Assembly: GCF_046119375.1 (NCBI RefSeq)
Contig: NW_027362769.1
Span: 374,790,001-374,854,000, forward strand
Direction of reading: 5' to 3'
Length of the DNA: 64,000 nt
DNA from: Phyllobates terribilis
Taxonomy: Eukaryota
The notes under the pieces were generated by a model. The model was not told the origin of the DNA, did no database searches, and was given only the letters and a program-made list of their open reading frames with translations. Below are positions 6,250 to 40,335 of the stretch, one piece after another. The translations under genes were made by a program, and so were the position numbers. The stretch's first letter is position 1, and every line of letters begins with the position of its first letter.

Positions 6250-9200
6250 ATGAGCCGGTATCCAGTAGAAGCCAAGGCTGTAGGACTGGTGCAGCATGAG
6301 AAGCAGAAGGTAAGCTTCTATCGCTGATATTCCTGTCCACTCCCATAATATTTCCCCATGACTTTAGGAGGAAAACGAAACACAATGCATGCACTGGACA
6401 ATCCCTTTTATGCAAGCAGGGTCCTCTTATAATTAGGGAATGCCATTAATTGGACCCAGTGATAAACTAACCTGTGGGGAAACCTGGCAGCAGGTGTTTC
6501 ATTTTTCTGCAGTGCCCCCACAGTGTAAATGTAGTATTACACAGTTCTGTACAACGCACATATGCGCTGGATCCTCCAGAACATAGATGAAACTTATGGG
6601 TAAAGCCTCATTCAGACGCCGGTGATTTTTATTGTATGTAAATATATGGACCGTTGTTCATCAGTGTTATAAATCCGATGTCAGGTTTTACCATCAATTT
6701 TTCATCAGTGATTTTCCGGTATAAAAAAAATAATTATTAAGCTTCTCCTATACATTAGACGTTAATCACTGATGCCATCCTTGCGCTGTGTTTTTCACGG
6801 ACACATAGACATGTATGGGTATTTTTGATCTATGATTTGGATCAAAAAATAGACATATCTCTGATTTTTTTTGTGGAACACATGGTCTCCCAAAAAGAAA
6901 CAGAGAGCCCTATAGACTATAATGGGTACATATCTTACCGTGAAAAAAAAAAATTGAGATCTGAATGGAGCTTAAAGTTTTACGCTGTCATTTATGCTAT
7001 TCTTTGTGTTCTTGCAGCTCTTCATGTTCTCCATCCTCTGGTCGGACTCTAATAATATTCTCATATACAGGACGTATGACGTCTTCAAGGAGCTTTCAGT
7101 AAGTTTTTTTCATTTTAATTTAGAGCTATACAAGAGACTCAAACATGAGAGTGAAATTGTAGACAGGAAAATATAAAAACAGCCATAAAACCTACAATAA
7201 TGACAACCTCGGTATTCCTATAATAAGTACAGAGCCCTCATAATAACAGCCACAGAATTCCAATAATAACAGCTACAGTAGCCCATAATAATAGTGTCCA
7301 AAATAACTTTTATGGTAGCTCCATAATAATAAGTACAGAGGGCTGTAGAAACTGCCATAATTCTCCATAATAACAGCCACAGAGTGCAAATAATATCAGC
7401 CTCATTGCCGAATAATACCAGCCCTATAATAATAAGTACAGCATGCCATAATACCAGCCACAGTGCCCCATCCCCAAAATAATAAATGCAGAGTCCCATA
7501 ACAACCACAGTGCCCCATAATAATAAATACAGAGTCCCATAATAACAGCCACAGTGCCCCATAATAATAAATACAGAGTCCCATAATAACAACCACAGTG
7601 CCCCATAATAATAAATACAGAGTCCCATAATAACAGCCACAGTGCCCCATAATAATAAATACAGAGTCCCATAATAACAACCACAGTGCCCCATAATAAT
7701 AAATACAGAGTCCCATAATAACAGCCACAGTGCCCCATAATAATAAATACAGAGTCCCATAATAACAGCCACAGTGCCCCATAATAATAAGTACAGAATG
7801 CTATAATAACAGCCACAGTATCCCATAATAATAAGTACAGAGTCCCATAATAACAACCACAGTGCCCCATAATAAGTACAATGCCCCATAATAACAGCCA
7901 CAGTGCCCCATAATAAGTACAATGCCCCATAATAACAGCCACAGTGCCCCATAATAATAAGTACAGTGCCCCATAATAACATCCACAGTGCCCCATAATA
8001 ATAAGTACAGAGTCCCATAATAACAACCAAAGTGCCCCATAAGTACAATGCCCCATAATAACAGCCACAGTGCCCCATAATAAGTACAATGCCCCATAAT
8101 AACAGCCACAGTGCCCCATAATAATAAGTAGAGTCCCATAATAACAACCACAGTGCCCCATAAGTACAATGCCCCATAATAACAGCCACAGTGCCCCATA
8201 TTAAGTACAATGCCCCATAATAACAGCCACAGTGCCCCATAATAATAAGTACAGTGCCCCATAATAACAGCCACAGTACCCCATAATAAGTACAGAGTCC
8301 CATAATAACAGCCACAGTACCCCATAATAATAAGTACAGTGCCCCATAATAACATCCACAGTGTCCCATAATAATAAGTACAGAGTCCCATAATAGCAAC
8401 CACAGTGCCGCATGAGTACAATGCCCCATAATAACAGCCACAGTGCCCCATGATAAGTACAATGCCCCATAATAACAGCCACAGTGCCCCATAATAATAA
8501 GTACAGAGTCCCATAATAACAACCACAGTGCCCCATAAGTACAATGCCCAATAATAACAGCCACAGTGCCCCATAATAATAAGTACAGTGCCCCATAATA
8601 ACATCCACAGTGCCCCATAATATTAAGTACAGAGTCCCATAATAACAACCACAGTGCCCCATATTAAGTACAATGCCCCATAATAACAGCCACAGTGCCC
8701 CATAATAATAAGTACAGTGCCCCATAATAACATCCACAGTGCCCCATAATAATAAGTACAGAGTCCCATAATAACAACCACAGTGCTGCATAAGTACAAT
8801 GCCCCATAATAACAGCCACAGTGCCCCATAATAAGTTCAATGCCCCATAATAACAGCCACAGTGCCCCATAATAATAAGTACAGAGTCCCATAATAACAA
8901 CCACAGTGCCCCATAAGTACAATGCCCCATAATAACAGCCACAGTACCCTATATTAAGTACAATGCCCCATAATAACAGCCACAGTACCCCATAATAAGT
9001 ACAGAGTCCCATAATAACAGCCACAGTACCCCATAATAATAAGTACAATGTCCCATAATAACAGCCACAGTACCCCATAATAATAAGTACAGTGCCCCAT
9101 AATAACAGCCACGGTACCCCATAATAAGCAGAGTCCCATAATAACAGCCACAGTACCCCATAATAATAAGTACAATGCCCCATAATAACAGCCACAGTGC

Positions 9201-12200
9201 CCCATAATAATAAGTACAGAGTCCCATAAGAACAACCACAGTGCCCCATAATAATTACAGTGCCCCATAATAACATCCACAGTGCCCCATAATAATAAGT
9301 ACAATGGCCCATAATAACAGCCACAGTGCCCCATAATAAGTACAATGCCCCATAATAACAGCCACAGTGCCCCATAATAATAAGTACAATGCCCCATAAT
9401 AACAGCCACAGTACCCCATAATAAGTACAGAGTCCCATAATAACAACCACAGTGCCCCATAATAAGTACAATGCCCCATAATAACAGCCACAGTGCCCCA
9501 TAATAACAACCACAGTGCCCCATGATAACAGCTATGGAGCTCCTCTAATGACCGCTTAAGTGTCCCTATAATATCAACCCTCAAATAACGGCCATAGATC
9601 CCCACATAGTCCCAATAACAACAGCACCAGTACTCTAAAAATTACATCCAGAGACCACATAATAGCAACCACAGTACCCTAAAAATAACAGCCTCAGTGC
9701 CCTATGATAACAGTCCCTGTCCTAAAGCCACGGTACCCTAAGGGTATGTGCACACGTTGCATTTTTTATGCGTTTTTGTTACAGGAAAAAAAAACATCGT
9801 TTTCCAGTACCAGCAAAGTGAACGAGATTTCAGAATTTCTTACTGATGCTGCTTATTTTTTCCTTGCAAATTTGAATTAAATCTGCCGCATTTCAATTCT
9901 TTCAGAGTTTTTGCAGCATTTTTCATCTATTCAAATGAATGGGTGAAAAAACGTATCAAAGATGAGCGTATTTTATGCAGCGCTTTTCCTGTCAACACTT
10001 CCATATTTGCAGCAGTAATATCTAATGCACATACTGAACATGTGAACATACCCTAATAATACTAAGCAGGGTCCCCATAATAAGAGCTGATGACAGCCAC
10101 ATTGCCTTCACATGAGAACAGCGCCCTAGTAAAAAAACCACAACGCTACACTGCCCTCAATAACAGCCACAGTGATCTTATCTCAGAAGAGGACTATTGT
10201 AGCCCCCAGTAATTACTGAGTAAGTAAGTATAACCCTCATCATCTGCTTTGATCATCTAGAAATCACTTACGAGGAAGTTTCCACTGGAGGCCGGCGTGG
10301 TGAACAAATTAGAGAGAATTCTTCCCATTCTCAGGGGTAAGTGAGGCATTTACTCCACGCAGAAGACATCAGAGATGCAAGTGATCTGTGAAATTACATA
10401 GGACTGCAATAACGCTAACCTCACACGTAGCCATTTATTTTGTTTTTGGTCATTTTTGTTTGTTTTTCATTTGTGCCTTATTCTGCATTTAATTAGCTTT
10501 TTTTTAAGTTTATTTTATATGTACTATTCTGTTTTTTGTTCCTTTTTTATGTTCGTCATTGTGAAGAAAGTTTGGAGTTTTCAGATTTTTGCGGCCGTTT
10601 CATCATTGCAACGTTTTAAAAAGTCACTAAATTTTTATGAAAATGTCATCCAGCTTTCCTCGTTTATCTACATCTTAAATTTTTGGTGAAACATATGACA
10701 TTTTGGGTTATTAAAATCCCCAAACCGGTTAAAGACAAAAATAAAGCGCTTTCTTTCTTTATTTTTGTGCAAAATTCTTGAATCATGGACCATTTGGAAG
10801 AATTTGGTGCAAAAAAAAAAGCCCTTAACGAATAACACAAGAGAAAGTAAACAGAAAAGTGACTCTTCTTTTTTCCATTAGGTCTATGACATCACGTAAT
10901 TAAAAACTGACTAGCTAAATCTTTCTAAGTTCTATGTAAAAACAGAAGGTCATTTTTTCCTGTATGAGTCATAAGTCACTGCAAAAGTCCCAGGTCAGGG
11001 AGAGGAGGGAGCAGCTGGGTCAGGAGTTGAACAGATGATGATTGCAGAGACGAGAGACCTCCTGTTTCTACATAGAGCAGAGAAAAGAGAAGAATTAGCT
11101 GGGTAGAAAGGCAAAATGAGCAATTGTAAGTACACAGTGCTATATAATATGATGATTGCAATGTATTAAGAGGATAAAATCTTTGATGGGAGTGCTTCTT
11201 TAAAGAACTACAAGTCCTAGCATAATGGATAAATGGACAAATTGCATGGCCGGCGTCTGTCTCTAACAGCAGAAAGCGGAGCTGAGCTCTGTGCGCTGCT
11301 GTTAACCATTTATGTGATGCTGTCAATCTCTGACAGCAGCATTTAACTGGCGGAGTTGCCAGTACAATCGCATTGTCCCCCCTACATGGGACTCAATTGC
11401 AGAATATTAATGAGTTGAAGGCTACCGGGAACTAGATGTTCGCAAGTTCAAGGGTAGTAAAAAAAAAAACGAAAAAAAACCCCATAGTTTTAAAAATATA
11501 TATTAAAAAAAGTAAAAAATTTGAATCATTCCTCATTTTCCCTCATTAAAAAATGAATATATTTGAAATCACTGAGTCCGTAAACGTCCTGTACATCAAT
11601 ATATAAAATTAATGAATCCGTACGGAAAACTTCAAAAAGAGAAAAAAATGATCAAAACGCCAGAATTGCCCTAAACATCCTATGTACGACAAAATGGAAT
11701 CAAGGAAAACGTCAGTTCGCAATGCAAAAAACAAGCCCTCACACAGCTCAATAGACAGAAAAATAAAAACATTCCGGGGGTCTCAGAAAATGGCGACATG
11801 AACCAAAATTTATTTATCTGTATTTTTTTTTTTTTTAAACTTCAAATTTTTTTTTATTAAATAAAAAAAACAAACTATGCAAGTTTGGTATCACCGTAAT
11901 CGTACAGACCTGGAGAATCAGAGGAAAAATAAAAAATCCTTGTCGGGAAGGGGTTAAAGAACTCCTTTGCCTCTGAATAGATACCAAATGAATGAGTAAA
12001 GAACTTCATTTTCCTTTCAGGTTGAACAAGTTAGTGGAACAATGGGAGTCCTTCTTGTGATTTTACACGAAACTTGTATGACAATGAACGTTTTCTTCTA
12101 ACTATTATGAAAATCTTAGACTTTCATTTTACAAGGATCAGGAAATGTCACTGTTAAATATTTTATAGTATTTGTTTTATATGCAGAATTTACTTATAAG

Positions 12201-15200
12201 ATCCAATCTGCTGATAAAATCTTTGAACCAGACCTTACGATGCGGTTTATTGCTCACATTAGGAATATATAAACAGGGTCTGTCTGTTCATTCCGCAACT
12301 GATAAGCTAAAGTTGTGACATTTTATTGGAAGTGCTTTTATATAGAGTCACACCCTTCTATAGAAAAAAAAATAAGTTCTAGAACTTTTTAGAACAATCA
12401 AAACTAAAGCACTAAGTAAGTCATTACAGTAGAGGTTCCAAAATATTGGCCGGCTAGCACTTCGAGAACTGGCATAATAGCAGAACGTCGTAATATGGGA
12501 TCTAGAATCAACCAGGTTATGAAAATATTCTGTGTACTGTAATATTTGGTGGATCAGGGCGACACTACACTCTATAACTTAGAGTTACATAGTTACATAG
12601 TTACATAGTTTATAAGGCCGAAAAAAGACAAGCGTCCATCCAGTTCAGCCTATTTCTTGTGCACTGCTGCTATTCCGCAGCGTTGATCCAGGTTAAGGCA
12701 AAAAAAAACCATGCGGTATAGGCCAATTTACATCATTGAGGAAAAATTCATTTCCCGACACCAATCTGGCAGTCAGATTAAATCCCTGGATTAATTAACT
12801 AAGCATAAGATGTAATTTTATTGTTCTCAAGAAAGGCGTCCAGGCCTCTCTTGAACTCATTAAGTGAGTTGGACATCACCACTTCCTCTCCCAGAGAGTT
12901 TCAGAGTCTCACGGCTCTGACCGTAAAGAATCCCCTTCTATGCTGGTGCAGGAACCTCCTTTCCTCCAGACGCATAGTGTGCCCCCTCATCTTTGTCACC
13001 ATCCTTGGTATAAATAGGTCATGGGAGAGATCTCTGTACTGCCCCCTGATGTATTTATACATGTTTATGAGGTCTCCCCTAAGCCTTCTCTTTTCCAACG
13101 TAAATAGGCCTAATTTTGACAACCTCTCTGGGTATTCTAGTCCCTCCATTCCCTTTATTACCTTAGTCGCCCTCCTTTGTACCCTCTCTAGCTCCAATAT
13201 GTCTTTCCTGAGCACAGGAGCCCAGAACTGTGCACAATATTCTAAGTGCGGCCTTACCAGCGCTTTATACAGAGGAAGAACAATGTTCTCATCATATGCC
13301 CCTATTCCTCTTCTGATGCATGCCATGACTCTATTTGCCTTCGCAGCTGCTGCCTGACACTGGGCACTCCAATTTAATTTGCTATTAACCAAGACGCCCA
13401 GGTCCTTCTCCATGTCAGATTTCCCCAACGGTTTCCCATTTAATATGTATGGGTGACTGCTGTTTTTCTTTCCCATGTGCATGACCTTACATTTATCGGC
13501 ATTGAACCCCATTTGCCACTTTTTGGCCCAACTCCCCAATTTATCTAAATCCTCCTGTAGCTGTGACCTATCCACATCTGTATTAACTACTTTACAAAGT
13601 TTAGTATCATCTGCAAATATTGCTATTTTACTATGCAACCCTTCCACTAGATCATTAATAAATATATTAAATAATATAGGGCCCAAGACAGACCCTTGAG
13701 GCACCCCGCTAGTAACCCTGACACACCCTGAGCTTACTCCATTGATAACCACCCTCTGCTTTCTATCACTCAGCCAGCTATTTACCCACTTGCACACATT
13801 ATCCCCCAGACCAAGCATTCTCATTTTATATACCAACCTTTTGTGTGGCACGGTATCAAACGCTTTGGAGAAGTCAAGGTATACACCATCCACTGACTCT
13901 CCCCGGTCCAGCTGTGAGCTCACCTCCTCGTAGAAGGCCATCAGGTTTGTTTGGCAGGAGCGATCCCTCATGAATCCATGTTGATATGGAGTTAGACAGT
14001 TATTATCATTAAGATATTCTACAATAGCATCTCTAAGAAATCCTTCAAACAATTTACCCACAACAGACGTTAAGCTGACTGGTCTATAGTTCCCAGGGTC
14101 ACTTTTAGACCCCTTTTTGAATATTGGTACCACATTTGCTTGGCGCCAGTCTAGTGGGACAGTCCCTGTCCATAAAGAGTGCTTGAATATAAGATACAGC
14201 GGCCTGTCTATCACATTACTTAATTCTTTTAGTACCCGGGGGTGTATGCCATCTGGGCCTGGTGACTTGTCTATTTTGATATTATTTAGGCGTTTCTGTA
14301 CTTCCTCCTGGGTTAGGTGGGTGATATTTAGCGGAGGGTTTACTTTATCACTCTGCATTTCCTCCGATAAATTGTTTTCTTTTGTGAAAACAGTGGAGAA
14401 GAAGCTATTGAGTAGGTTTGCTTTACCCTCATCGCCCTCTATGATTTTACCCAGGTTATTTTTCAATGGGCCAACTCCATCAGTTTTAATCCTTTTACTG
14501 TTTATATAGTTAAAGAACAGTTTGGGATTCGTTTTACTTTCCTTGGCAATTAGTCTCTCTGTCTCCTCTTTTGCTATTCTTATTTGTTTCTTACAGATTT
14601 TGTTTTTTTCCCTATAAGATATTAGCGCTTCCTCGCTGCCTTCTTGTTTAAGTTTACCGAAAGCCCTTTTTTTGTTTTTCATTGCCCTCTTGACTTCCTT
14701 ATTTAGCCACATTGGCTTCCTCCTATTCCTAGCCCTTTTATTCCCGTAAGGTATGTACCTTCTACAGTGACTATGTAGGACTGTTTTGAAAATTTCCCAT
14801 TTTCTATCCGTGCTCCTATTACTAAAGATACTATCCCAGTCTATAAGGTGAAGGGCATCTCTTAGCTGTTCAAACTTTGCCCTCCTGAAGTTCAGTGTTT
14901 TGTGACTCCCTTGCTGGGCACCCTACTGAAGCACATGTGGAATTGTATAATGTTGTGGTCACTATTTCCCAGATGCCCCCCGACCTGCACCTCAGTTATT
15001 CTGTCTGGCCTGTTAGTTAATATTAAATCTAAAAGGGCCGTCCCTCTAGTTGGTTCCTGCACAAGTTGTGACAAATAATTGTCTTTGATAATTGACAGAA
15101 ACCTGTTTCCTTTCTGAGATCTACAGCTTTCGGTTTCCCAGTCTATATCGGGGTAGTTGAAGTCCCCATATCGGGGTAGTTGAAGTCCCCAACAATGTGC

Positions 15201-18200
15201 AACAATGAAACACTAATACTTCGAATTGGTCAGTACTGGCATTCAAGTACATAGGGTTGGTCACAATTATAGTTGGAATCGGTCAACAATTGACCATACA
15301 ATTGGCATACTATTATATGGAACTGGTAAGCTCTGGCGTACTATATATTTGAGGCTGGTCAGAATTAGCACTATAATACTTGGGATGGTCAACATTGACA
15401 TTTTAACACTTGACATTGGTTAACATTAGCACACTAATACTTGGAATTGGTCAACATTTGCATGCTAATACTTCAGGTTGGTCAACATTGGACCAATACT
15501 TGGGGATGGTCAACAATGGCACTTCAATACTTGAGGTTGGTCAACATTGGACCAATACTTGGGGATGGTCAACAATGGCACTTCAATACTTGAGGTTGGT
15601 CAACATTGGACCAATACTTGGGGATGGTCAACATTGAAACTTCAATACTTGAGATTTATCAACATTGACAACCTAATACTTGGGATTGGTCAGCAATTGC
15701 ATGCTAATACTTGAGGTTGGTCAACATTGGAACAAAACTTGGGGATGATCAACATTGGCAATTCAGTACTTGATATTGGTCAATATTTACACACTGATAC
15801 TTGAAATTAGTTAACACTGACACCGCAACCTTTGTGATTGGTCAAGCATAACACTTCATTACTTGGGAATGGTAAACAATTGATTTCCAATACTTGAGAT
15901 TGGTCAACATTGGCACTCCAATACTTGGGGATAGCCCACATTGGTAGTCCAATAATTTAGTATGGTAAACATTGGCACACTAACACTTGAAATTAGTCAT
16001 CATTGGCTTACTAATACATGGAAATGGTCAACATTGTTACTCCAGTACATTAATACTTGAAACTGGTCAACATTTACACACTAAATCTTGGAACTGGCCA
16101 ACAATGACATTCCTATTCTTGTGTTGGTCAATATTGGAACACCAATTCTTGAGGTTGGTCAGTATCAGCACACTAATACTTGGTGTTGGTCAACACTAGC
16201 ATATTACCGTAATACTTGAAACTGGTCAACATTGGCACTGTATTACTTGAGATTGGTTGACATTAGCACACTATTACTTGAAAATAGTCAACAGTAGCAC
16301 ACTTGCTTTTAAGGCCTTAGTTAGATAATGTCTTCGGCCTCTACAAGTCCTATCTCTTTAAAAGTATTATGAAAGTATTGAGTTGTATCTATGACAGAGT
16401 GAATCATGAATTGCAACCTTGGTGTGACTTACAACTATTATGATTCAAGTTACCACCTTACTCATGCCAGTCATTGTGTTGCGTAATAATTATTTTTTTG
16501 CTTTTATAGATGCCCCATTGCTGTTCCGCAGTAAATTTTCTAATCGATACTTAGAGAGGCTCCGACTTTTAGAAATTTATTCCAAGGAACTTCTTCAAAC
16601 TGACTCCAAGATCTCTCAGTGTGAAGAGGTTATTGATTTTTTTACTCCTAAGAAGCAGGACCTCACTCCGTCCTTTCCTGAAAACAGGTTTGTATAGTAG
16701 ACGTCCTATCTAGAGATCATGAATGGACAGACGTATCACCGTCACCACGAGTCATGTTAACATCCTTGAATGTTCATCTTTGGTTTTTCTGAGCATGAAA
16801 AGTACCTAAATCGTCATTATCTCCTTATTTCAGTGTTGTAATAATGCCATCAGACAATGATCAAAAAGAGGTAACATATCCACCCAGGTCAACACAACTC
16901 ACCACCACACAGCCAATTATATCTGAATCCTACATCTGCCTTGATAACTTTGAAACCAAAGATACCAAGAACAGACCATTTAAGGTCAAGAAGAATCAAT
17001 GCATTGATGTCCTGATAAGAGATCCTTCTGGTAGGTCCTAGATTTCACATGTGACAAGAAAAGAGTCACCACCAAGTGAATCTAAAAGTTAGGCATCTAT
17101 TCCTTTCTTCTAGGCTGGTGGTTGGTGGAGAATGAAGAGAAACAAGTATCCTGGTTCCCGGCTCCTTATCTGAAAAAGTCAGAGTCTTTAGAAGATATTA
17201 ACTCAAAGAGGAAATCATTCAGGAAAGGTTGGTGAAGTGGACAACTTTCATAGCTCCAACTGAGGCAATTATTCAGAAAAATCATAGAGGCATAAGAGGA
17301 TTACACAGGTGGGGGCTTGTGACCATTGTTTCCTCTAAAGGCCTCTATAAACATTAGACTACTGTCGTCTAAACCCGTTGATATCTCATTGACAGATGAT
17401 GTAGTTGGAGAGAATGATCTGGGCTGACGGCAGCGACTCTCTCATAGATAACACAGGAGGACTCAGCCGAGCCGAACGTTTCTGTGTATGGGGGAATTGG
17501 GAGAGATAGCAGTCCGCTGAACGATTAGTCCGACATCATTTGCCCAAAAGTTATTTATTATGCATGGGGGGGTTTGTGTATTTGTGGCTTAGGTTAAGGC
17601 ACTCGGACTACCGATCACATTGTTCTTCTGGAGATAAGCTGCCGGCCCATGTGTCTGCTGGCGGCTTTCTCATAGAGGACACGGGTACGCTCAACCAAGC
17701 GCTCCTGTGTATGGGAGTGTGAACAGATATGGCTGTCAGAGGAATGATCGGCCAAAGCATCGTTCAGCCGACAGCCATCTAATGTGTATGGCTGGCCTCT
17801 GGGACAGGAGCTCTGATATCTCCAAGCCAGGTTATACAAAAATTCTAGAAATATTAGCCTAAATTGCTCTTACAATTTTTCTTACAGCAGCCAGATACTC
17901 CAGAGCATCTTGATCTAAGAGAGTGACAGTTATTGATGGCGATTCATCAAAGCTTTTTCACCAGATTTTTGGCGAAAAAAAGCTTTGAAAAGTCGCATTA
18001 TTTTGTGCAATTGCGAGTTTGCACAAAAAAAGTGATTTGGCGTGTTAAGGTCATTCATGCCGTCAAATTCATGATGAGCGGCGGTGTTTGCTAGGCCACA
18101 GATCTTACTCCAGCTACGCACCCCACCTGATTCATTAAGAGGCGTGCGCTTCTTAATGAATCAGGAGCATCTGCTCCAAAACGCCCCCTCATCAAGACCG

Positions 18201-20383: not shown

Positions 20384-20439
20384 ACCCATGCTAAGGACTA
20401 TAAATTTAAAAAAAAATTGCAGGGAACCTCCACCATGCT

Positions 20440-21439
20440 TCAATATTGCCTGCAGACCCTCATTATTGTGCCGCTCTCCAGCCCTTCAGCGGACAAACAG
20501 TCTTCTGTTTCAGCCAAATATTTCACACTTTGACTCATCAGTCCAGGGCACCTGCTGCAGTTTTTCTGCACACCAGTTAATATGCATTTCTGCATAGTTG
20601 AGTCCCTCCATCTTGTTTCCATGTAGAAAGTTTTGGGTTTTGGCAGCATGAAGACCAGGTCTGGCGAGATTTTTCTGAAGTTCTGAGTTGATGGCACTGC
20701 TGGACATCTTCCAATTTAGAAGGGACGTAAGAATGATATGTCTGTGATCTGCTGCGCTAAGTTTCCTTGGCTGGCCTCAATTTTGCCCATTTGTTGGTGC
20801 TTTTTCAAAAGACCAGCAGCACATCTTGAAACAACAGTCTGCTTTGAAATCTTTGCCTGGGAGACACCTTGCTGATGCAGTATAACTACGTTGTGCCTTA
20901 TTGCTGTGCTCACCCTTGCCATGGTGTATGACATGTGACATGAAACTGACTTCCACAACCTCACCTTTGTAGCAGAGTTTGGCTGTTCCACACCCAGTTT
21001 TAATCCTTGCTGATGCAGTATAACTACCTTGTGTCTTGTTACTGTGCTCACTTTTGCCTTAGCAGCAGAGTTTGGCTGTTCCTCACCCAATTGTAAGCCT
21101 CCTACACAGCTGTTTCTGCTTCAGTTAATAACTGTGTTTCAACCTATATACGAAAATGATGATCATTATCACCTGTTTGTAGAATTGGTTACTCACACAC
21201 TTGACTATAATCCCACAAAATCCCTGATTGTGTGCACACGTACTTAGAAGAATGGGTGCTGTTTTGAAGACAAAGAGCGGTCACCAAATATTGATGTGAT
21301 TCACATTTCTCTTTTGTTCATTCACTTTTCATTTTGTTAATTGAAACAAAATAAACTATTAACACTTCTATTTGTGAAAGTTTCTTACTTTGCAGCATTT
21401 TTGTTTTACCTTTCTGCCTAAAATATTTGCACAGAACTG
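20440..21439 (-). mobile_element. Tc1 5' half immediately downstream of the NOXO1-A stop codon
   Basis: Minus-strand WTDESKCEIFG (first D of the DDE triad) and HNVVILHQQGVSQAKISKQ HTH; TIR reading TA|CAGTTCTGTGCAAATATTTTAGG at 21441-21418; internal local duplication at ~20860-21090. Confidence 0.8.
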
Positions 21440-21674
21440 TAAATCACAAGCAAATTATCCTCCTACCCTCACCTAAGAGATTTCTTTGACAGGAACATTT
21501 CCTAGAAACAGGTGACAATCTGGTATCTGACTCCACATCCTTCAAGGTTAGTTTCATATTCTGTAACAAGGCTGATTTCCCCGTAGAGGATTTAGGTGCA
21601 TGACGCCTGGCAGGTGTAGGGTGACCTCACCTCTGCTGCACCCCCTGCTGGTGGATTTTTCACTTGCAACTGTA

Positions 21675-25816: not shown

Positions 25817-26289
25817 GGCTATGTTCACACATTGCGTTTTTTTTTCTGCAACAAAACCTGATCTCTTGCCAGGAAGGTTTGTTCCCAATTTTGCTTGTTT
25901 TTTTTGCTGCGTTTTTTTCACTGTCCTTTTGTCTCTTTATGCATGTACATAAAGTTCAATGAAAAAAAAATCTCATTCTATTTCATCGGGTTTTGTCACA
26001 AAAAATGCTGAAATAACTGACACCTGCATTTTTGATGCGTTTTTTCAGTGTTTTTTTCACCACCCATTACTTCCAATGGGTTAAAAAAGTTGAAAAAACT
26101 CTGAAAGAAGTGACATGCTCTATTCTGCAAAAACAAACAAACATGCAAAGCACAAAATACTGATGAAACAAAAACCAAGGTGTGTGCATGAGATTTCTGG
26201 AATCTCATAGACTTTGCTGGTACTGTAAAACGCAGCTGAAAATTTGCATTAAAAAACGCATAAAAAATATGCAATGTGTGAACATAGCC
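25817..26289. mobile_element. PIF/Harbinger-type MITE
   Basis: TIRs GGCTATGTTCACACATTGC / GCAATGTGTGAACATAGCC; TTA TSD on both sides. Confidence 0.85.
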
Positions 26290-29200: not shown

Positions 29201-30122
29201 TGTAATAGTACTGACCTTAAACATCGTGTTGCCGGGTCATTTTTATTGCACAATGAACATCATAAAAACCCAAAGATTAATGACGGGATTGCAAAGGTTT
29301 TTATTTTTCTTCATATCATCCCACTTAGAACTTTTTGTCCATTAAATGGTAAAATGAAAGGTCATTCAAAAGAACAACTTGTCCTGCAAAAACAAATCCT
29401 CATTATTGAGCTATGCAGATGGAAAGATAGAAAAGTTATGACTCTTGGAAGAAGGAGAGAAAAATTGCCACAACAAGAACAAAGAATTGAAATTGAGGCG
29501 GCTATAATGGCAGCGTAATTTGTGAACAGAGTGGGGGGGTATAATGTAGGAAAACTGAGGAAAAAAAAGGAGATTTTTTTCAGTGCAAAGTATGTCGAAA
29601 ACTAACAAAAGCAAAAAAGAATTTAGCAACAATGAAGGTAATGTGTTAACTTTAAAATGAAAGAATATATAACATGGGAGTATCAAAGGAGTGATATATT
29701 GATTTCAGAAATATCAGTGATATCCATTGTCTAGGCTCTTTATAACTAAACATGGAGAATCATTTCTAGGATCTACATTTTGGAGTCTACAAATAGTAAA
29801 AAGCCCCCCTGCACAAACGTCGCACAATGAAAGTCGGTGGTTCTTTGATCTAGATACACTAGAAATGAAATTGAACTATTTGCCTTTCAATAAAGCAATC
29901 TATTAGGGGGGTAGACTTCCAAGACCAGTCGAGGACCAAAGGTATCCCTGATGAAGGAAAATATATTTTCCGTAAAAGTGTCACTATTCTGGGACGGGAC
30001 CGCCAGCAATTCTCTATAATCTGAGGGAACACTTTGCAAACTGTTCGTTTCCTCCGCAGCAGAAATTAAGTATTACACAGTCCTCATAGAAGTCAATGAA
30101 CTGTCTGTGGAATGTTTAGATT

Positions 30123-30750
30123 CAGTTGTGCTCAAAAGTTTACATACCCTGGCAGAATTTTTCCTTTCTTGGCCTTGTTTCAGAGAATATGAATGATAAC
30201 AAAAAAACTTTTTCTCCACTCGTGATTATTGGCTGGGTGAAGCCATTTATTGTCAAACTACTGTGTTTTCTCTTTTTAAATCTTAATGACAACCAAAAAC
30301 ATCCAAATAACCCTGATCAAAAGTTCACATACCCCAGTTCTTAATACCAGGTATTGCCCCCTCTAACATCAATGACAGCTTGAAGTCTTTTGTGGTAGTT
30401 GTGGATGAGGTTCTTTATTTCCTCAGATGGTAAAGCTGCCCATTCTTCTTGGCAAAAAGTCTCCAGTTCCTGTAAATTCCTGGGCTGTCTAGCATGAACT
30501 GCGCACTTGAGATCTCCCCAGAGTGGCTCATTGATATTGAGGTCAGGAGACTGAGATGGCCACTCCAGAACCTTCACTTTCTTCTGCTGTAGCCAATGAC
30601 AGGTCGACTTGGCCTTGTGTTTTGGATCGTTGTCATGTTGGAACATCCAAGTACGTCCCATGCTCAGCTTCCAGGCTGATGAGTGCAAATTCACCTCCAG
30701 TATTTACTGGAAAAATTCTGCCGGGGTATGTAAACTTTTGAGCACAACTG
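30123..30750 (-). mobile_element. Internally deleted Tc1 retaining the transposase C-terminus, about 450 bp upstream of NOXO1-B
   Basis: TIRs CAGTTGTGCTCAAAAGTTTACATACCC at both ends; [29 protein letters not shown]. Confidence 0.9.
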
Positions 30751-31139
30751 TATGTGGAGTCCTCCAGAGCTGGGGGTGCTCTTTTTAATTATGATCTGAT
30801 GATGGAAAGTGAGATGAAGATACCCCTTCAGAATTCCTTAGTAGAGTATATGATCGTAGCTTTCCTAACCCAGATTCATACAATATGACATCTGGGCTAG
30901 ATTTTAGGTGAGTTACGAAGTCCCCCCCATTATTACGTCAGACCAGGCATTCTTTACATATGATATTATTACTGCTACAATACATTGTCTTCTCTTCTCT
31001 TTAAGAAATCACATGATGATGAAAACAAGGAATTACCCAACTACCAGAATGTTGAGTCCTTTACTTCCTCCAAGGCGTGATGTTTCTTTCTTGAGTCAAT
31101 AACTTCTGATTGGTGGAATAATTATAACCTGGCGTTGCA

Positions 31140-31211
31140 GAATATTATAAAGAGAGGCTACCACTGTCTATAATCATAACAATCTTGTCGGCAAGATGCC
31201 TCAGCAGACCA
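31140..31211 (+). promoter_or_regulatory. Candidate TATA box and proximal 5' region of NOXO1 copy B
   Basis: TATTATAAA at ~31143-31151, about 45-60 nt upstream of the ATGs at 31196/31211. Motif only; the TSS is not demonstrated. Confidence 0.35.
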
Positions 31212-33774
31212 TGGCCGGGCGTCATCCGTTGGAAGTCAAAGCTGTCGGCGTTCTTCGGAATGGGAAGCGGAAGGTAGCGTATTGCAACCATTTGTTCTTC
31301 TCGTAGCTGTACAGTCTATAGCAACGTCAACAGAAACAGCGCCACCCTTGTCTACAGGTTGAGTCTAGTATTGCAGTTCAGCTCTATTAAAGTGAATGGT
31401 GCTGAGATGTAATACCACACATAACCTGTTGGGGTGCTGTTTTTGAAAGAACACAGCCATGTTTTTAATAATCTTGAGCCTGTTTGCACTCCGTTGCACT
31501 CACCTGCCTCAATAATTATGTCTTGAAAATTCACTAAGGCTACTTTTTAAACGAGTACTCTCTTTTGTCTGCTTACTAGAAGGGTCCTTCAATGATCTCC
31601 TATTGGGACCCCAAGAATTCAGTTTTAATCTATTTTAAATCTTAATTTTCCTTCAGCGCCACCATAGGGGAAATTAGGCATTACACAATATCTATTCAAA
31701 TCTATTGGTTGTCTGTGTAATGTAGCACAGGACAGGTCCTCCAGAGCGAGAGATAGTCTTTACACTGCTCACCGCTTTGACCATGAGATCATGAACAATG
31801 GACTCCCATATATGAAATCAATAGGGCGTATGAAAATGGGTTTCCAAACTAAACAACCCCTTTAAATATGGTGGTTCTGTGAACAGAAACAGAGTATAAA
31901 CCATGATGATAGCCTCCTTGAACCTTGAGGTTGCCATATGCCTACAGGATGCATGGCTCTAACCACAGGACCCCACACATTTTGGATGAAAGTTGGTTGA
32001 ACCTAACGATTTTGGCAGGACCGAGCAATCATCTGTTGTGTATGGGGTCCTTCCTACTCTCCTCCAACAGATGATACCAGGAGAGATAAGAATCATGGAG
32101 TTTTCAGGGGAGAAGTCTGACAGCATCTTTCTTCCCTCTGCCCGTTCAAAAACATCAAATCGATCTTATTAAAGGGGATCGGAGGACTTTTGGGGTCCTG
32201 CCGTTTCTGAGCCTTAATGCAAAATCTATAACAAGACCCCACATGCCATGTTGTGGCCCATGTGCGGTGCACCCCCTAAAGTTACACCCCTAGTAACAAT
32301 GACAAACACGCATAGCCTGCTATGTATAGATCTTGCTTCTTCTTCCAGGCCATGCTTGGACTTCTAGTCCATCAATAATAAAAAAAAATATCTATAAAAA
32401 AAAAGTGAATTTTATGTAATTATTTTTTTCATTTTGACAGAGCAATATCTTTTCAATTCTGTGGTCTGACCACAACGACATAGTCGTCTACCGGACGTTT
32501 GAAGACTTCAAAAAGATGCACGTAAGTAACATTTTTCCCAAAAAGGACGTTGCTCGTTGCGTTGTAGCCCATGGAGCCATGGTTTACATAGAAACCAATG
32601 ACGCTTTTGCTTAATGAGTATCTAATAGCGTTTAGGCGAGGCCTGGTCACGTGAGAGGCCACGTAATTGCACTACAGTTGCCACGTTTTAGTATCCGACA
32701 TGTATCATGTGACCAGTGTCCAATTTTAGCCATGTGTTTAATTTATGACATTTTTTTGATAAAAGGGTTGTTTGCGACACCGGCCATAGCAATCAAAATG
32801 AAAGCTGGACTCTGATTGGTTGCATTAGGCAACAATGGCAAAATTAATTGAGACTTCAAAACTCAGGCAAGGGACAAGTATATCATTTGTCCACAGCAAC
32901 CAGCATTACCCATAGCAACCAATCAGCTGTCAGCTTTTATCTTCCACAGGGCCTTTGAAGAATGAAAGATGTGACCTGATTGGTTGCTGTGGGAAACTGC
33001 TTTACTTTTCCCTGTTAGTAATTCTAATAAAGTCCCCTATGACCTCGTTAGTTTCTGTCTACGTGGAAGATTTTTAGTCTGTATTTCGGTGGCAAAATGT
33101 TTTGGATAGAGCATAAAAACATTTTTTAAGACTCTTATTTACACCCAATTTGACACGTCTAGAGGTGTCCTAAAAAGGGGTATGGCTGAGAGAGGTGATA
33201 AAATCTGCTGAATTTAACAAACTTTTGGATTAAAATCTGCACTATCTTGCGCCAGTCATAAGGAAAATCCCTTAACATGCATCACAAGATGCAGAAAATG
33301 TATTCGCCATTTTTATAAACTTGATTTAGAAAAAAGTGAAATAAATCTTTTTTTTTTCCTCTTCTTTATTCATAGCGAGAATTAAGAAAAAAATTCCCAT
33401 TGGAATCCGGGTTACTTCGAAAATCGGAGAATATGATCCCCAAACTGAGAGGTAACGAGACTAGTCATCAATATCCAAGATCGACTGGTCCCAATCATTT
33501 CTAGGGATCCCATAAAAACAATCAAATTTAGGGGGTTCATTATAATTCAGCGGTCGGCCCCCAAGCATAGAAGGGCCCAGTATTTATGTAGCCCTTTCCT
33601 GGACCCTTGGTGAAATCCAACACAGGCCCCACCTGGCTAAGCGCCCTTTAAAGGGTGCCTAGCCCATTATATATATATATATATATAAATCCTGGCTAGA
33701 ATTTTTCCACATTTAGGGTATGATTTAAAGAGAAAAAAAAAAGAAAATTCTATATAACCCACACACACACAGCG

Positions 33775-33839
<65 letters not shown>

Positions 33840-36800
33840 TAGATGGTGGCCCGATTCTAACGCATCGGGTATTCTAGAATATGTATGCGGCCGACTGGGC
33901 GCGACTAATCAGCGAAGCAGTGTTTAAATGGGTTGTGTACTACTTTAAATTAACCCCCCAATGTATCCCCCCGGGGCCCCTAATGAATTTTGTAATTACG
34001 TCAGGTTGTCAATACTGCTTGTGACAACATCGCTGACCACGCACAGCCAGCACGTAATTCCCCCGGCTCTTGCTTCCGCTTACATCACGACTATTTGTGG
34101 CTGCAGCCAGGGGTCTCCTGTTCCGCGTACCACGGTGAATGACGGGCTGTGGGCGGGGTTATCCCCCATCGTGTCACACCCAGCATCCACCGCGCGCTAT
34201 GTCAATGAATGCGCGTGCAATCAGCGAACCGTGTTAGTGAGGACCGGGGAGCGGCGCTGCCTGTGCGGGTACTTCCGCTGCGAGCAGCCGGGAGATGACC
34301 GGCTAGCGCCGGTCATCTCCCGGCTGCATCGCCGCTGACCTCCATGCGGCTACCGTCGGGAGATCAGCGGCTAGGTTCGCTGATCTCCCGACGGCAAGTG
34401 TGAAGGGAGGACCGGGGAGCGGTGCCGCCTAGGCCGCCGGTCGGGGTACTTCTGCTGCAAGCTGGTCATCTCCCGGCTGCATCGCCGCTGACCTCCGTGC
34501 GGCAGATGAGCCGCTAACGGCCGCCATCTTGTTCTGAAATCCGGCGTCGCTGATTGGCCGCGGCTGGACCAATCAGCGACGCTGGATTTCCTGGATGGAG
34601 ACAGACGGGATAAGCCGATTATATAGTAGATATATATATATATACACACACATATATACATACATAAACATACATACATTCACACAAACATAAAATGGAA
34701 AAGAAAAATCATACCCAAGATGTGGAAAAATCCTATCCAGAATTTATGGCTCGGTCACGTAAGTAAATTCTGGATAGGATTTTTCCCCATGTTGGGTATG
34801 ATTTTATAGAATTTAAAAAAAAAATCGTACCCAAAATGTGAAAGAATCCTATCCGGAAATTTTTTATTTTTTTTTCTTTCCGAAGAATGGGACTGTCCCA
34901 TGGGCGGATAATTATCTGTAATAAATATTCGGCATAGCAATGTGTTTACACCAGAGGTGGCTGAGTAATTCCCTAAAACGGCAATTACCATTGTGGACAT
35001 TATCTTTAACAGCCGTCCCGATGATTCATGGGCTAATTTCCTCTTCTTCCTTATAGACGTGCCGATCTTCAGGAAAAACAGGAGCAGCAGTCGCTTTATA
35101 GAGAGGCTGCGATTACTGGAGAGATTTTCCCAGGAGCTGCTGAAGACGGACAACAAAATCTCACAATGCAACGTGGTGACGACGTTCTTTACGCCCAAAG
35201 ACAGTGACCTAAACGCCACCTTCCCCGAAAACAGGTGTGTGCAGCCTGAGGACAACATATTCACATTTTAGGACATTTTAGGACGCATTCAGGACATTTT
35301 AAGCAGTCTTCGGAGCCACTTTTTTTTTTTTTTTTTTAGGTGGAGTTTGCACAATCCCCAACCTTTGTTATACAATGCACCAGATCGTCCTTGGAGTACC
35401 AGAACTGCTGGCAAATATGTTATTATACTTCATTTAGTGATCTAAAAGTTAGGAGACATGTTGCCCACTTTTTAAAATGACCAACAAAGAAATTCATAGT
35501 CGGGGGTCTCCTATTGAGGACCCTCATCTAGTAACTGGAATGCAGCAGCTACTGAGAGCATCTTTAACTATGGAGGACCTGATCTGTCCATGCATTGTGA
35601 TGACAGACTATTAAACACTGTGCAATACTTAATTTCTCCTGTAGTGGCCACTGTACAGAATTTTAACACTTGCTTCTTGATTCAGATTATGTGATCACAG
35701 TTGATCACTGTGATTTTTAACATATTGTGTGGGTTTTCTTAAAATAAAATTTAAGATTCAACAGCTTTAGAGGAGACCTATCACCAAGTCAAAAGTGGCC
35801 AGTTTTGCTTTTATTTCATTATCAAGGTTTTTTTGATTGTTAATTCCATACCATTCCAGAGATACAGCCCTTTTTTAATGCTTTTTTGGTCACACGGCAT
35901 TAATGCAGAGCAACCTAAAGCCACATCCCCAGAAAAATCCTATCAGCCACGCCCCTTTGGCAAAGAACATAAAAATTAGGACTAAATAAAATGGTCCATA
36001 GCTCTGGAACCGTATTGTACATTTTAAAAAGACAAAAAATGGAATATTCAGGGAGGCTAAAGGAATAAAATAAGACCAAACAACTGGCCATTTTTTGGCT
36101 TTGTGACAGATCCCCTTTAAGAGACAGAAGCTTCTGCACTAAGACTTGGAAATAAAATATAACTCGTTTTTCTGGTTACAGTGTAGTGATATTGCCATCA
36201 GAAGTAAGAGAAACTCAGAAAAGAGAAGAACCGAAACAACTACCACAACCACCAGCCTCCGCACCTATTGTATCCCAGATGTATGTGTGTATCGAAGACT
36301 ACGAAACCAAGGACACCAAGAACCGGCCCTTCAAAATCAAGCGCTGTGAGCAGCTGGGGGTATTGATCAAGGAAAACTCAGGTGAGACGTCACCAGGCCT
36401 TTATCGATAGATGCAAGTTATAGGAATGACATCATGGAAGTTGTAATAACGCCTATTTTACATTTTAGGGTGGTGGCTGGTGGAAAACGAAGAAAAACGA
36501 GTGGCCTGGTTTCCTGCTCCATTCCTTAAGGCGGTAGAAGAGAAAGAGGAGTCGGATTCGGGAACAGAATCAGATGACAAAGGTACGCTGTGCACCCGGT
36601 GTTGCATGTTCTACAGATGTATGCTTAAAAACAATGGGAACATTGGAAACTTCATTGCTATAGAAAAAGAAAAGAAAAAAAAAACCGGTGCAGGAATTGT
36701 TTCCACTACTAGGTGGCAGATTAGAATATTGTATCACTCTTGTGTGTTGCTCAATCGGCTCAAGAGCACAATATCTGGTCAGACAAAGTATTGCAAGCAA

Positions 36801-39800
36801 AAAATAATCCATTTTTTTTTTATAAAATATCATTATTTTTGGGAGAGGTGAGGAGACCGATACACTGCAATTGTGGCTGATCTCTGCTTTTAGAGGCAGA
36901 TGCAGGCGTAAGGAGTGTGGAGTAAGCTCAGCTCCTGATCTATGCCAGACATATAGTTCATGGAGAACGACAGGGTTAATAATTCCATAAACTATAACGT
37001 CCTGTACTCTTTTACTATCCAGGAGTCCGTTACTATTCAACTTCATCTTATGAAGCCATGAGCTGCGATGAATTGTCCATCTCCAGAGGAGTCGTAGTAG
37101 AAGTCAAGGAGAAGTCAAACAATGGATGGTGGCTAATAAGGTATGCAAATAGGATCGGTTTCTAGAAATAAATCCATTCAATGAGGATTCTACACTGCTC
37201 AAAAAAATAAAGGGAACAGTCAAGTAACACATCCTAGATCTGAATGAATGAAATTCTCATTGAATACTTTGTTCTGTACAAAGTTGAATGTGCTGACAAC
37301 AAAATCACACAAAAATCATCAATGGAAATCACATTTATTAACCATTGGAGGCCTGGATATGGAGTCACCCCCAAAATTAAAGTGGAAAAACACACTACAG
37401 TCTGATCCAACTTTGATGTAATGTCCTTAAAACAAGTCAAAATGAGGCTCAGTATTGTGTGTGGCCTCCACGTGCCTGTATGACCTCCCTACAACGCCTG
37501 GGCATGCTCCTGATGAGGCTGAGTATTGTGTGTGGCCTCCACGTGCCTGTATGACCTCCCTACAACGCCTGGGCATGCTCCTGGTGAGGCTGAGTATTGT
37601 GTGTGGCCTCCACGTGCCTGTATGACCTCCTTACGCCTGGGCATGCTCCTGGTGAGGCTGAGTATTGTGTGTGGCCTCCACGTGCCTGTATGACCTCCCT
37701 ACAACACCTGGGCATGCTCCTGATGAGGCTCAGTATTGTGTGTGGCCTCCACGTGCCTGTATGACCTCCTTACAACGCCTGGGCATGCTCCTGGTGAGGC
37801 TGAGTATTGTGTGTGGCCTCCACGTGCCTGTATGACCTCCTTACGCCTGGGCATGCTCCTGGTGAGGCTGAGTATTGTGTGTGGCCTCCACGTGCCTGTA
37901 TGACCTCCCTACAACACCTGGGCATGCTCCTGATGAGGCTCAGTATTGTGTGTGGCCTCCACGTGCCTGTATGACCTCCCTACAATGCCTGGGCATGCTC
38001 CTGATGAGGCTCAGTATTGTGTGTGGCCTCCACGTGCCTGTATGACCTCCCTACAACGCCTGGGCATGCTCCTGATGAGGCTCAGTATTGTGTGTGGCCT
38101 CCACGTGCCTGTATGACCTCCCTACACCGCCTGGGCATGCTCCTGATGAGGTTGCGGATGGTCTCCTGTGGGATCTCCTCCCAGACCTGGACTAAAGCAT
38201 CCGCCAACTCCTGGACAGTCTGTGGTGCAACGTGACGTTGGTGGATGGAGCGAGACATGATGTCCCAGATGTGCTCATTCGGATTCAGGTCTGGGGAACG
38301 GGCGGGCCAGTCCATAGCTTCAATGCCTTCATCTTGCAGGAACTGCTGACACACTCCAGCCACATGAGGTCTGGCATTGTCCAGCATTAGGAGCCCAGGG
38401 CCAACCGCACCAGCATATGGTCTCACAAGGGGTCTGAGGATCTCATCTCGGTACCTAATGGCAGTCAGGCTATCTCTGGTGAGCACATGGAGGGCTGTGC
38501 GGCCCTCCAAAGAAATGCCACCCCCACACCATTACTGACCCACTGCCAAACCGGTCATGCTGAAGGATGTTGCAGGCAGCAGATTGCTCTCCACGGCGTC
38601 TCCAGACTCTGTCACGTCTGTCACATGTGCTCAGTGTGAACCTGCTTTCATCTGTGAAGAGCACAGGGCGCCAGTGGCAACTTTGCCAATCCTGGTGTTC
38701 TCTGGTAAATGCCAAGCGTCCTGCACGGTGTTGGGCTGTGAGCACAACCCCCATCTGTGGACGTCGGACCCTCATGGAGTCGGTTTCTAACCGTTTGTGC
38801 AGACGCATGCACATTTGTGGCCTGCTGGAGGTCATTTTGCAGGGCTCTGGCAGTGCTCCTCCTGTTCCTCCTTGCACAAAGGCGGAGGTAGTGGTCCAGC
38901 TGCTGGGTTGTTTCCCTCATATGGCCCTCTCCACGTCTCCTGGTATCTGCTCCATGCTCTGGACACTGGGCTGACAGACACAGCTACCCTTCTTGCCACA
39001 GCTCGCATTGATGTGCCATCCTGGTTGAGCTGCACTACCTGAGCAACTTCTGTGGGTTGTACTGTAGACACCGCCTCATGCTACTGTACCTCTAGGGGTG
39101 AGAGCAATGGCAAAATGAAAAAGTGACCAAAACAACAGCCAAAAAGGATGAGAACAGAGAAATGGTGTGTGGTCACCACCTGCAGAACCGCTCCTTTATA
39201 GGGGGCATCTTGCTAATTGCCGATCATTTCTACCAGTTGTCTGTTCCATTTGCACAACAGCAGGAGAAATTGATTCACAATCAGTGTTGCTTCATAACTG
39301 GACAGGTAGATTTCACAGAAGTGTTATAGACTTGGAGTTATATTCTGTTGTTTAAGTGTCCCCTTTTTTTATGAGCAGTGTATATCTTAATATAGATTTA
39401 GTTGAAAAATGTAGAAACATTTATAGTTTTAAAAATGCCATGTAATACCTCCCTTCCCCTGTGGGGGAGCTGCAGGGAAAATAAAACTTGCTGTATCAGT
39501 ATAACTTTACCATATACTTGACATAATGGATCTCTAATCTCATCTTTATGAATAGGTATAATGGAAAAACTGGATATGTCCCAGCGATGTATTTGAAACC
39601 CTACCGAAATTGTCACCAGCTTGAGTCCATGATGAACCAAGGAGCCTTTTCTTCTATGGGAAACCTCTTCAAGGCCTCCAGCACCTTGGAGGTGAACAGA
39701 GCAGAGGAGTCATGGAGGAAATATGATAATCATCCTGACGCAGAAAATAAACTGGACAGACGAAAATCCAGGTCAATTAGCGGTTTCCCACTAAATACTC

Positions 39801-40174
39801 AATATGGATTTCAACAACCTCCTGTGAGAACATCACCGATGGGAAAAATCGGGGTGGAGACCCCAAGCTCGGAAACAGAAATGAAGCCTAAGGTTCGGAA
39901 GAACAGAAATCCACCTGCTGCTTCCGAGCAGCCAGCAATAGTCGTCCAAGAAGCCCCCATCCCCCGACCGAGGAAGATAAGTCAAGACGCACGGACTATG
40001 GGAAGTAATCCCAGCAGCCCTAAAGAAACTAGCGGCTCCCCCAACTCTCATCTTGTCTTTGACATTACCCCTCCGGTCCCTCAACGGCCCAAACATCATG
40101 AAATTCTTAACAATTGTACATTTGTAACGAGGACAGCTTTAAAGAAAAGGGAGGGCGTACTCCTGGACGGCTAA
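31211..40174 (+). CDS. NOXO1: NADPH oxidase organizer 1, tandem copy B, 482 aa (487 aa if the in-frame upstream ATG at 31196 is used)
   Basis: Exons 31211-31273 ([13 protein letters not shown]), 32441-32521, 33376-33451, 35057-35234, 36182-36381, 36469-36582, 37023-37140, 39556-40174. All GT-AG, total 1449 nt = 483 codons. Exons 2, 3, 4, 6, 7 are the same size as in copy A (81/76/178/114/118). [20 protein letters not shown]. Directly abuts TBL3 tail-to-tail. Confidence 0.94.
33780..33838. repeat. (TA)n microsatellite
   Basis: About 29 TA units, resuming after the Helitron at 34631. Confidence 0.95.
33839..34630 (-). mobile_element. Non-autonomous Helitron, family 1 copy 2 (short, 792 bp, array not expanded) in NOXO1-B intron 3
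   Basis: Reverse complements of the same termini as 21675-24257 (CTAGATGGTGGCCCGATTCTAACGCATCGGG ... ATTATATAGTAGA); inserted in a (TA)n tract. Confidence 0.85.
35771..36116. mobile_element. Kolobok/T2-type MITE in NOXO1-B intron 4
   Basis: Ends AGGAGACCTATCAC / GTGACAGATCCCCT|TTAA. Confidence 0.55.
37193..39380 (-). mobile_element. Full-span Tc1 transposon with frameshifted transposase in NOXO1-B intron 7
   Basis: TA TSDs; TIRs CACTGCTCAAAAAAATAAAGGGAACA; remnants [18 protein letters not shown] (HTH), [30 protein letters not shown]. Confidence 0.92.
37444..38150. repeat. 10 x 71/68-bp tandem array made from the Tc1 transposase 3' end
   Basis: Unit starts at 37444, 37515, 37586, 37654, 37725, 37796, 37864, 37935, 38006, 38077. 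Confidence 0.95.
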
Positions 40175-40335
40175 AGACAGTAAAATGTGTTTTTTTTAAA
40201 CTTTTAATTATATCTATATTTATTCTGTATATTTATTATTTCAGTAATTGGATCCATATTGGTGAAGTGGCACTGAGCAGATCGATATAGGGTTTAGTAT
40301 ACCTGGTAATTTACTTATATTATGTTCATTCTATG

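Follow-up and report, generated by a model that had tools for sequence, protein, structure and literature searches.

A tandem pair of NOXO1-type genes beside a TBL3-like gene in the frog Phyllobates terribilis, with a probable origin before living frogs diversified

The stretch of DNA analyzed here, referred to as the window, comprises 64,000 nucleotides of the Phyllobates terribilis genome (RefSeq assembly GCF_046119375.1, contig NW_027362769.1, positions 374,790,001 to 374,854,000 of the forward strand), and all coordinates below are positions within it. It contains two complete eight-exon genes of the NADPH oxidase organizer 1 (NOXO1) type, both on the + strand, which we call copy A (6250-20383; 1419 nt of coding sequence, 472 aa) and copy B (31196-40174; 1464 nt, 487 aa). 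NOXO1 governs reactive-oxygen production, in the gut through NOX1 and in the inner ear through NOX3. Its PX domain binds membrane lipids, its pair of SH3 domains binds the tail of p22phox, as that of p47phox also does, and its C-terminal PxxPxRP sequence binds the SH3 domain of NOXA1. The mammalian protein is a constitutively active organizer, and tetrapods are usually regarded as having one NOXO1 gene.

The gene models were obtained by comparing the + strand translation of one half of the locus with the other half, which yielded eight colinear conserved blocks, and the splice sites were then set by reading. Position 6250 is the first base of the copy A ATG and position 40174 the last base of the copy B stop codon; every intron of both copies is of the GT..AG type, the exon start phases run 0, 0, 0, 1, 2, 1, 1, 2 in both genes, and exons 2, 3, 4, 6, and 7 (81, 76, 178, 114, and 118 nt) are equal in size between them (Table 1). 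An earlier note on this DNA had described two complete genes in the same orientation with eight exons, identical phases, and five equal exon sizes, and this description is confirmed, with both end coordinates exact. Over the whole protein the copies share 199 of 453 residues (44%). The exon 4 peptide is identical at 33 of 58 positions (57%) over whole codons, or at 35 of 60 when the two split codons are counted, the latter being the value previously obtained by hand alignment, and identity falls to approximately 27% in the C-terminal tails. A blastn comparison of gene A with gene B gave a single match, of 56 nt within exon 7 (75% identity); the introns of the two copies are therefore unrelated, and the earlier remarks on poorly alignable C-terminal parts and dissimilar introns hold as well. 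A tblastn search across the whole window found no third NOXO1 copy or relic.

Table 1. Exons of the two NOXO1-type genes, the spacer between them, and the neighboring WD40-repeat gene, in window coordinates.
Feature	Position	Strand	Remarks
Copy A exon 1	6250-6309	+	ATG at 6250; PX domain begins; spliced protein equals XP_073504505.1
Copy A exon 2	7018-7098	+	81 nt, PX; AG/GT, phase 0; same size as copy B exon 2
Copy A exon 3	10261-10336	+	76 nt, PX; AG/GT; same size as copy B exon 3
Copy A exon 4	16510-16687	+	178 nt, C-terminal half of PX; exon alone gives a weak Pfam PX match
Copy A exon 5	16834-17030	+	197 nt, linker and first half of SH3-1; aligns to p47phox tandem SH3
Copy A exon 6	17114-17227	+	114 nt, second half of SH3-1; WWLVENE..WFPAPYL motif
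Copy A exon 7	19179-19296	+	118 nt, first part of SH3-2; Pfam SH3_1 E = 2.8e-07 for the exon alone
Copy A exon 8	19789-20383	+	End of SH3-2, variable tail, PPVPERP proline-rich end, stop
Copy B exon 1	31196-31273	+	ATG at 31196; spliced protein equals RefSeq model P0154
Copy B exon 2	32441-32521	+	81 nt
Copy B exon 3	33376-33451	+	76 nt; run X19 contig runs from exon 4 into 33420-33449
Copy B exon 4	35057-35234	+	178 nt; joint 35230/36178 (cut +4), GT..AG, in 3 runs
Copy B exon 5	36182-36381	+	200 nt; joint 36379/36467 (cut +2) in 4 runs
Copy B exon 6	36469-36582	+	114 nt; joint 36580/37021 (cut +2) in 4 runs
Copy B exon 7	37023-37140	+	118 nt; joint 37138/39554 (cut +2) in 4 runs
Copy B exon 8	39556-40174	+	End of SH3-2, basic-motif tail, PPVPQRP proline-rich end, stop; contigs cover 39554-40200 with zero mismatches
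Spacer between copies A and B	20384-31195	.	About 10.8 kb, repeat-rich; 67-bp tandem array at about 21.7-24.3 kb
WD40-repeat gene, taken as TBL3	43800-54000 (approximate limits)	-	Minus-strand WD40 open reading frames; tail-to-tail with copy B

Both spliced proteins correspond residue for residue to models that RefSeq lists as "NADPH oxidase organizer 1-like [Phyllobates terribilis]" (copy A, P0207, XP_073504505.1; copy B, P0154), which share one 417.9-Mb record. The same two types, A and B, are present in approximately 25 other frog genomes. Two NOXO1 proteins lie on one chromosome record in, for instance, Bombina, Discoglossus, Xenopus laevis, X. tropicalis, Hymenochirus, Spea, and Pelodytes, and similarly in Hyla, Mixophyes, Engystomops, Leptodactylus, Anomaloglossus, Pyxicephalus, and Hyperolius. 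Outside the frogs, a pair on one record is found in the salamanders Ambystoma and Lissotriton and in the caecilian Rhinatrema; Pleurodeles and Geotrypetes have two NOXO1 proteins each, not shown on one record, and the coelacanth Latimeria carries two linked copies. The Engystomops locus has the gene order A, B, WD40 gene, with eight exons in both copies as in P. terribilis, and the gene upstream of its copy A is not NOXO1-like. In Xenopus laevis, copy A was not found within 10 kb of copy B. The earlier note had spoken of two organizer subunits for this lineage, a framing that needs correction: the pair is common to all frogs, with both types present in Bombina, in the pipids, and onward through Anura to the neobatrachians, it is already annotated, and salamanders, caecilians, and the coelacanth are paired as well.

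Additional NOXO1-like models were encountered in several frogs. Extra A-type copies occur in other poison frogs (three for Ranitomeya imitator, two for Dendrobates tinctorius), with only one in this window; a 993-aa model of Ranitomeya variabilis, twice the length of one copy, may represent two copies fused. These poison-frog proteins make up the set P0104, P0202-P0206. Eleutherodactylus coqui has a third, very divergent NOXO1-like protein of 520 aa (P0008), whose branch reached 1.3 changes per site in a quick tree.

The age of the duplication was addressed with a careful maximum-likelihood tree of 60 proteins rooted on shark and ray-finned fishes, from which two mammals were left out for very long branches and odd composition, the aberrant Eleutherodactylus protein for its very long branch, and some redundant frogs, teleosts, and sauropsids to thin the tree. 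Frog A (support 100/99) and frog B (100/100) are each recovered with Bombina, pipids, pelobatoids, and neobatrachians, and together they form one clade (97/96, or 98/96 with mammals added) inside Amphibia (96/92, or 89/86 with mammals added). The pairs of the other lineages likewise join each other, namely the two salamander types (96/88), the two caecilian types (100/99), and the coelacanth pair (87/64). Mammals, when added back to the careful tree, take a position at the base of the tetrapods; the first quick tree had placed them beside frog B, an arrangement that the careful search removed and that we treat as long-branch attraction. Since both frog types have good support, span Anura, and together make up one amphibian clade, the safe statement from these protein sequences is that the duplication predates the living frogs, and it most likely took place on the frog stem lineage. 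The proposal of an old tandem NOXO1 duplication is supported.

An unlikely alternative, which nevertheless survives better than any other, is that the duplication is older than the frogs, having occurred in the ancestor of Batrachia, of all amphibians, or even of a group including the coelacanth, and that the clustering by order is an artefact of gene conversion between the tandem copies or of fast evolution along the frog branches. One ancient event would be the more economical explanation of two linked copies in all three amphibian orders and in Latimeria. Approximately unbiased (AU) tests on the whole gene argue against it: a duplication shared by frogs and salamanders is disfavored under both pairings (delta lnL 28.5, p-AU 0.011; delta lnL 33.7, p-AU 0.0009), and one shared by all amphibians is strongly disfavored under all four pairings (delta lnL of at least 96, p-AU of at most 3e-4), although these rejections may be overstated, given that the tests used LG+F+G4 with fast constrained searches. 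The support for the frog A and B clade, given above, points in the same direction. Under a C20 site-mixture model with a single constraint, however, the grouping of frog A with salamander a is not rejected (p-AU 0.056). In addition, the signal for clustering by order differs among segments of the protein, being strong in the PX domain (delta lnL 14.3), weak in the SH3 domains (4.9), and absent from the tail (0.55), which alone does not separate the duplication hypotheses; partial conversion of the 5' portion would give such a pattern. A duplication on the frog stem remains the preferred placement.

The tails, although poorly alignable between the copies, contain two short motifs that are conserved in many non-mammalian NOXO1 proteins, namely [ST]-P-N-L, which directly follows the second SH3 domain, and, closer to the C-terminus, L-x-R-x-[RK]-S-[RK]-S-L; both occur in the single-copy NOXO1 of turtles, crocodilians, birds, and lungfish. 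Counted as simple patterns, with related species taken as independent, the basic motif R-x-x-S-[RK]-S is present in 5 of 20 frog A proteins and in 22 of 22 frog B proteins, and [ST]P[ND][LIF] in 16 of 20 frog A and 8 of 22 frog B proteins. The losses fall mainly in neobatrachians, where A keeps [ST]-P-N-L and loses R-x-x-S-[RK]-S and B does the reverse. In P. terribilis itself, the copy A tail has SPNL and RLQSIS, and the copy B tail has MGNL and RRKSRSIS. Because the basic motif is common to non-mammalian NOXO1 proteins, its presence in the copy B tail is read as an ancestral NOXO1 feature and not as one borrowed from p47phox. In appearance, [ST]-P-N-L resembles a proline-directed site, and R-x-x-S-[RK]-S a basophilic-kinase or 14-3-3 site. 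The complementary loss suggests that copies A and B may be regulated differently, and it would be compatible with a partition of regulatory inputs between them. For the earlier suggestion that the copies could serve different NOX partners or tissues, this complementary retention is the sole functional hint.

Selection on the two copies was estimated as the ratio of nonsynonymous to synonymous substitution rates (dN/dS) by the method of Nei and Gojobori (NG86), with both Engystomops genes (coding sequence taken from the genomic loci) and Logan contigs as references. The latter are intron-free contigs of other frogs, of which L001 encodes an A-type and L002 a B-type protein. Copy A gives 0.21 against Engystomops A and 0.26 against L001, and copy B gives 0.20 against Engystomops B; in both copies the PX-SH3 part is lower (0.12-0.17, with copy A at 0.15-0.17) and the tail higher (0.34-0.43). 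Synonymous sites are saturated between copies A and B, and also between copy B and the distant L002. Both copies are under purifying selection, as the earlier note had proposed, with overall ratios of approximately 0.20-0.26.

For expression, RNA contigs from four runs in two studies were compared with positions 35000-40200, which cover copy B. A single contig joins exons 4-8 in three of the runs, whereas in run X1 one contig joins exons 5-8 and exon 4 lies on a separate contig. All exons are joined precisely where the GT..AG sites had been predicted; on this stretch, three contigs have zero mismatches and the fourth has two, and one contig (run X19) extends into exon 3. Because these contigs join the exons at the predicted sites, copy B is transcribed and spliced as modeled. 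The share of words found in the runs, 0.4, was dropped as evidence of expression, since most of the depth lies on transposon remains in intron 7; there the summed contig depth runs into the thousands, far above that of the flanking exons, because these remains have many copies elsewhere in the genome.

It is very improbable that either gene, copy A being the likelier of the two, has fallen silent or is decaying while its frame is still open. Such a state would accord with the copy A tail being without the basic motif that nearly all non-mammalian NOXO1 proteins retain, but all eight exons of copy A are open with canonical splice sites, its RefSeq model carries no low-quality flag, intact A-type orthologues exist in approximately 20 species across the frog tree, an A-type spliced mRNA contig (L001) is available from another frog, and the dN/dS values given above are low both overall and within the domains. 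Two copies retained by selection is the reading that we follow.

The assignment to NOXO1 draws on the domains, the family comparisons, and the genomic neighborhood. The Pfam PX scores are 28.4 bits for copy A and 36.9 bits for copy B (cut-off 21.6), and Pfam SH3_1, SH3_2, and SH3_9 exceed their cut-offs in both. Against the PX domain of human NOXO1 (2L73) the copies score 111 bits (A) and 100 bits (B), and against that of p47phox (1KQ6) 49 bits (A) and 39 bits (B), that is, under half of the NOXO1 score. Both SH3 domains of each copy align with the p47phox chains 8wej_C, 1uec, and 1wlp, and proline-rich sequences stand near the C-terminus, PPVPERP in A and PPVPQRP in B. At the position of the p47phox autoinhibitory core, copy B is without Pro-Pro-Arg-Arg in an alignment to 1NG2, and copy A is without a polybasic core in the opposite stretch, as read from the family alignment only. 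A profile built from the two exon 4 peptides and compared with protein cluster representatives matched 83 proteins; among the matches named or read there was no NCF1, all being NOXO1-like except one that is SH3PXD2-like. In three word-index searches, the best 120 proteins were NOXO1 only. In the trees, both copies nest within amphibians among NOXO1-annotated proteins of fish, coelacanth, lungfish, sauropsids, and mammals, NCF1 not being part of these trees.

The neighborhood agrees with this assignment. The strongest single-stretch PDB match of the WD40 gene that follows copy B is the human TBL3 chain 7mq8_LR (179.6 bits), and in Anomaloglossus, Engystomops, and Xenopus laevis, too, the B-type gene has a WD40 gene (823-831 aa) after it. 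The synteny at TBL3 that the earlier note had asked about is thus present, with copy B adjoining the TBL3-like gene and copy A directly upstream of copy B. From the PX type, the domain layout, and the TBL3 neighbor, both copies are classed as NOXO1-type genes at the NOXO1 locus, and the earlier reading of both as NOXO1 paralogs agrees with the PX scores. The suggestion that one copy is instead a relative of NCF1 (p47phox) or SH3PXD2 (Tks) can practically be set aside: both proteins find their longest PDB match in the p47phox chain 8wej_C, a full-length NOXO1 structure not existing, and one Hyperolius B-type isoform is named "putative neutrophil cytosol factor 1C," but the PX domain of each copy, taken alone, scores more than twice as high with human NOXO1 as with p47phox, copy B is without the Pro-Pro-Arg-Arg of the autoinhibitory core, and both copies nest in the vertebrate NOXO1 tree and sit at the NOXO1-TBL3 locus.

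Taken together, our findings make it quite probable that the two genes of the window are functional co-orthologues of the one NOXO1 gene of amniotes and that they arose by tandem duplication beside TBL3 before the diversification of living frogs, with the frog stem as the most likely placement. Several points weigh against this interpretation. The C20 result and the uninformative tail have been described above; the placement on the stem is not secure; the root of the trees is made up of fish NOXO1 sequences, with no NCF1 among them; the motif counts have the limits stated with them; and the support for expression of copy A in P. terribilis consists of its RefSeq model and the A-type contig of another frog.

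Since the full organizer layout is kept in both genes, each copy would be expected to form an oxidase of the NOX1 or NOX3 type with NOXA1 and p22phox. By analogy with mammalian NOXO1, the PX domain of each copy is predicted to dock on membrane lipids; the tandem SH3 pair, as in p47phox and NOXO1, is predicted to hold the proline-rich tail of p22phox; and the C-terminal PxxPxRP sequence is predicted to recruit NOXA1 through the SH3 domain of the latter. These binding partners, and any division of labor between the copies, are carried over from what is known of NOXO1. A broader and tentative proposal, which we hold more doubtful than not, is that A and B have split the ancestral tail motifs between them and so may be organizers switched by different signals, and that frogs, salamanders, caecilians, and the coelacanth each independently gained and kept a tandem duplication of NOXO1, which amniotes never did.

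The remainder of the window is rich in repeats. The spacer between the copies (Table 1) gave no NOXO1-like coding remains in tblastn. Intron 2 of copy A contains a tandem repeat array of approximately 2.4 kb (7218-9605) with strong strand asymmetry (GC skew to -0.37), which yields long spurious open reading frames on the minus strand. In intron 3 of the same copy, an open frame of 603 aa on the - strand (12901-14712) is reverse-transcriptase-like and looks like an inserted long interspersed nuclear element (LINE). Tc1/mariner-like transposase remains and an array of approximately 70-bp repeats occupy intron 7 of copy B (37100-39500), with such material also at 30341-30694. Two long reverse-transcriptase-like open frames (497 and 342 aa; 59321-61812, + strand), situated past the WD40 gene on its 5' side, look like another LINE-type retroelement.

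With regard to earlier work, the evolutionary survey by Kawahara and Lambeth gives one NOXO1 for Xenopus tropicalis and does not mention the pair (PMC2121648). Our literature searches, which combined NOXO1 with frogs, tadpoles, amphibians, paralogues, and duplication, found no description of an amphibian NOXO1 pair. The genes are catalogued in databases, and the pair appears to be undescribed in the literature searched. On the question of novelty, which the earlier note had left undecided, the answer is accordingly divided: both proteins already stand in RefSeq under the name NADPH oxidase organizer 1-like, and no paper on the pair was found. Apart from the partition of the tail motifs and the duplications that may have recurred among amphibians, the pair is an ordinary case of retained duplicates. 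It does have practical consequences, in that all frogs, including the Xenopus models, carry two NOXO1 copies that selection has maintained since before the living frogs diverged, so that knock-down, knock-out, and expression studies must state which copy is concerned; redundancy between copies A and B could also mask phenotypes. The complementary tail motifs, in turn, offer a simple and testable idea on the regulation of NOXO1 outside mammals.

Compared with mammalian NOXO1, the frog proteins have the PX domain, the tandem SH3 domains, and the C-terminal proline-rich motif in the same order, find their best PX match in 2L73, and are encoded tail-to-tail with TBL3. They differ in that frogs have two copies and not one, and in that the frog proteins exceed the mammalian one by approximately 100 residues and have a long tail separating the second SH3 domain from the proline-rich end; [ST]-P-N-L and R-x-x-S-[RK]-S occur in frog tails and are absent from the two mammalian sequences examined. 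The RefSeq NOXO1 and NOXO1-like pairs of other frogs (for example Bombina bombina, Xenopus laevis, and Engystomops pustulosus) are orthologous to the present pair type for type, and nothing essential differs.

The teleost genes noxo1a and noxo1b are likewise two retained paralogues, but they lie on different chromosome records and group within ray-finned fishes, which makes them the product of a separate duplication and not counterparts of frog A and B. NCF1 (p47phox) has the same domain order, and its structures align well with the tandem SH3 domains of both copies. Unlike NCF1, however, copies A and B have a PX domain of the NOXO1 type, appear to be without the polybasic autoinhibitory core at the aligned position, and occupy another genomic location. 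The RRKSRSIS sequence of copy B is a basic, serine-rich motif that lies beyond the position of the p47phox core and belongs with the motif common to non-mammalian NOXO1 proteins.

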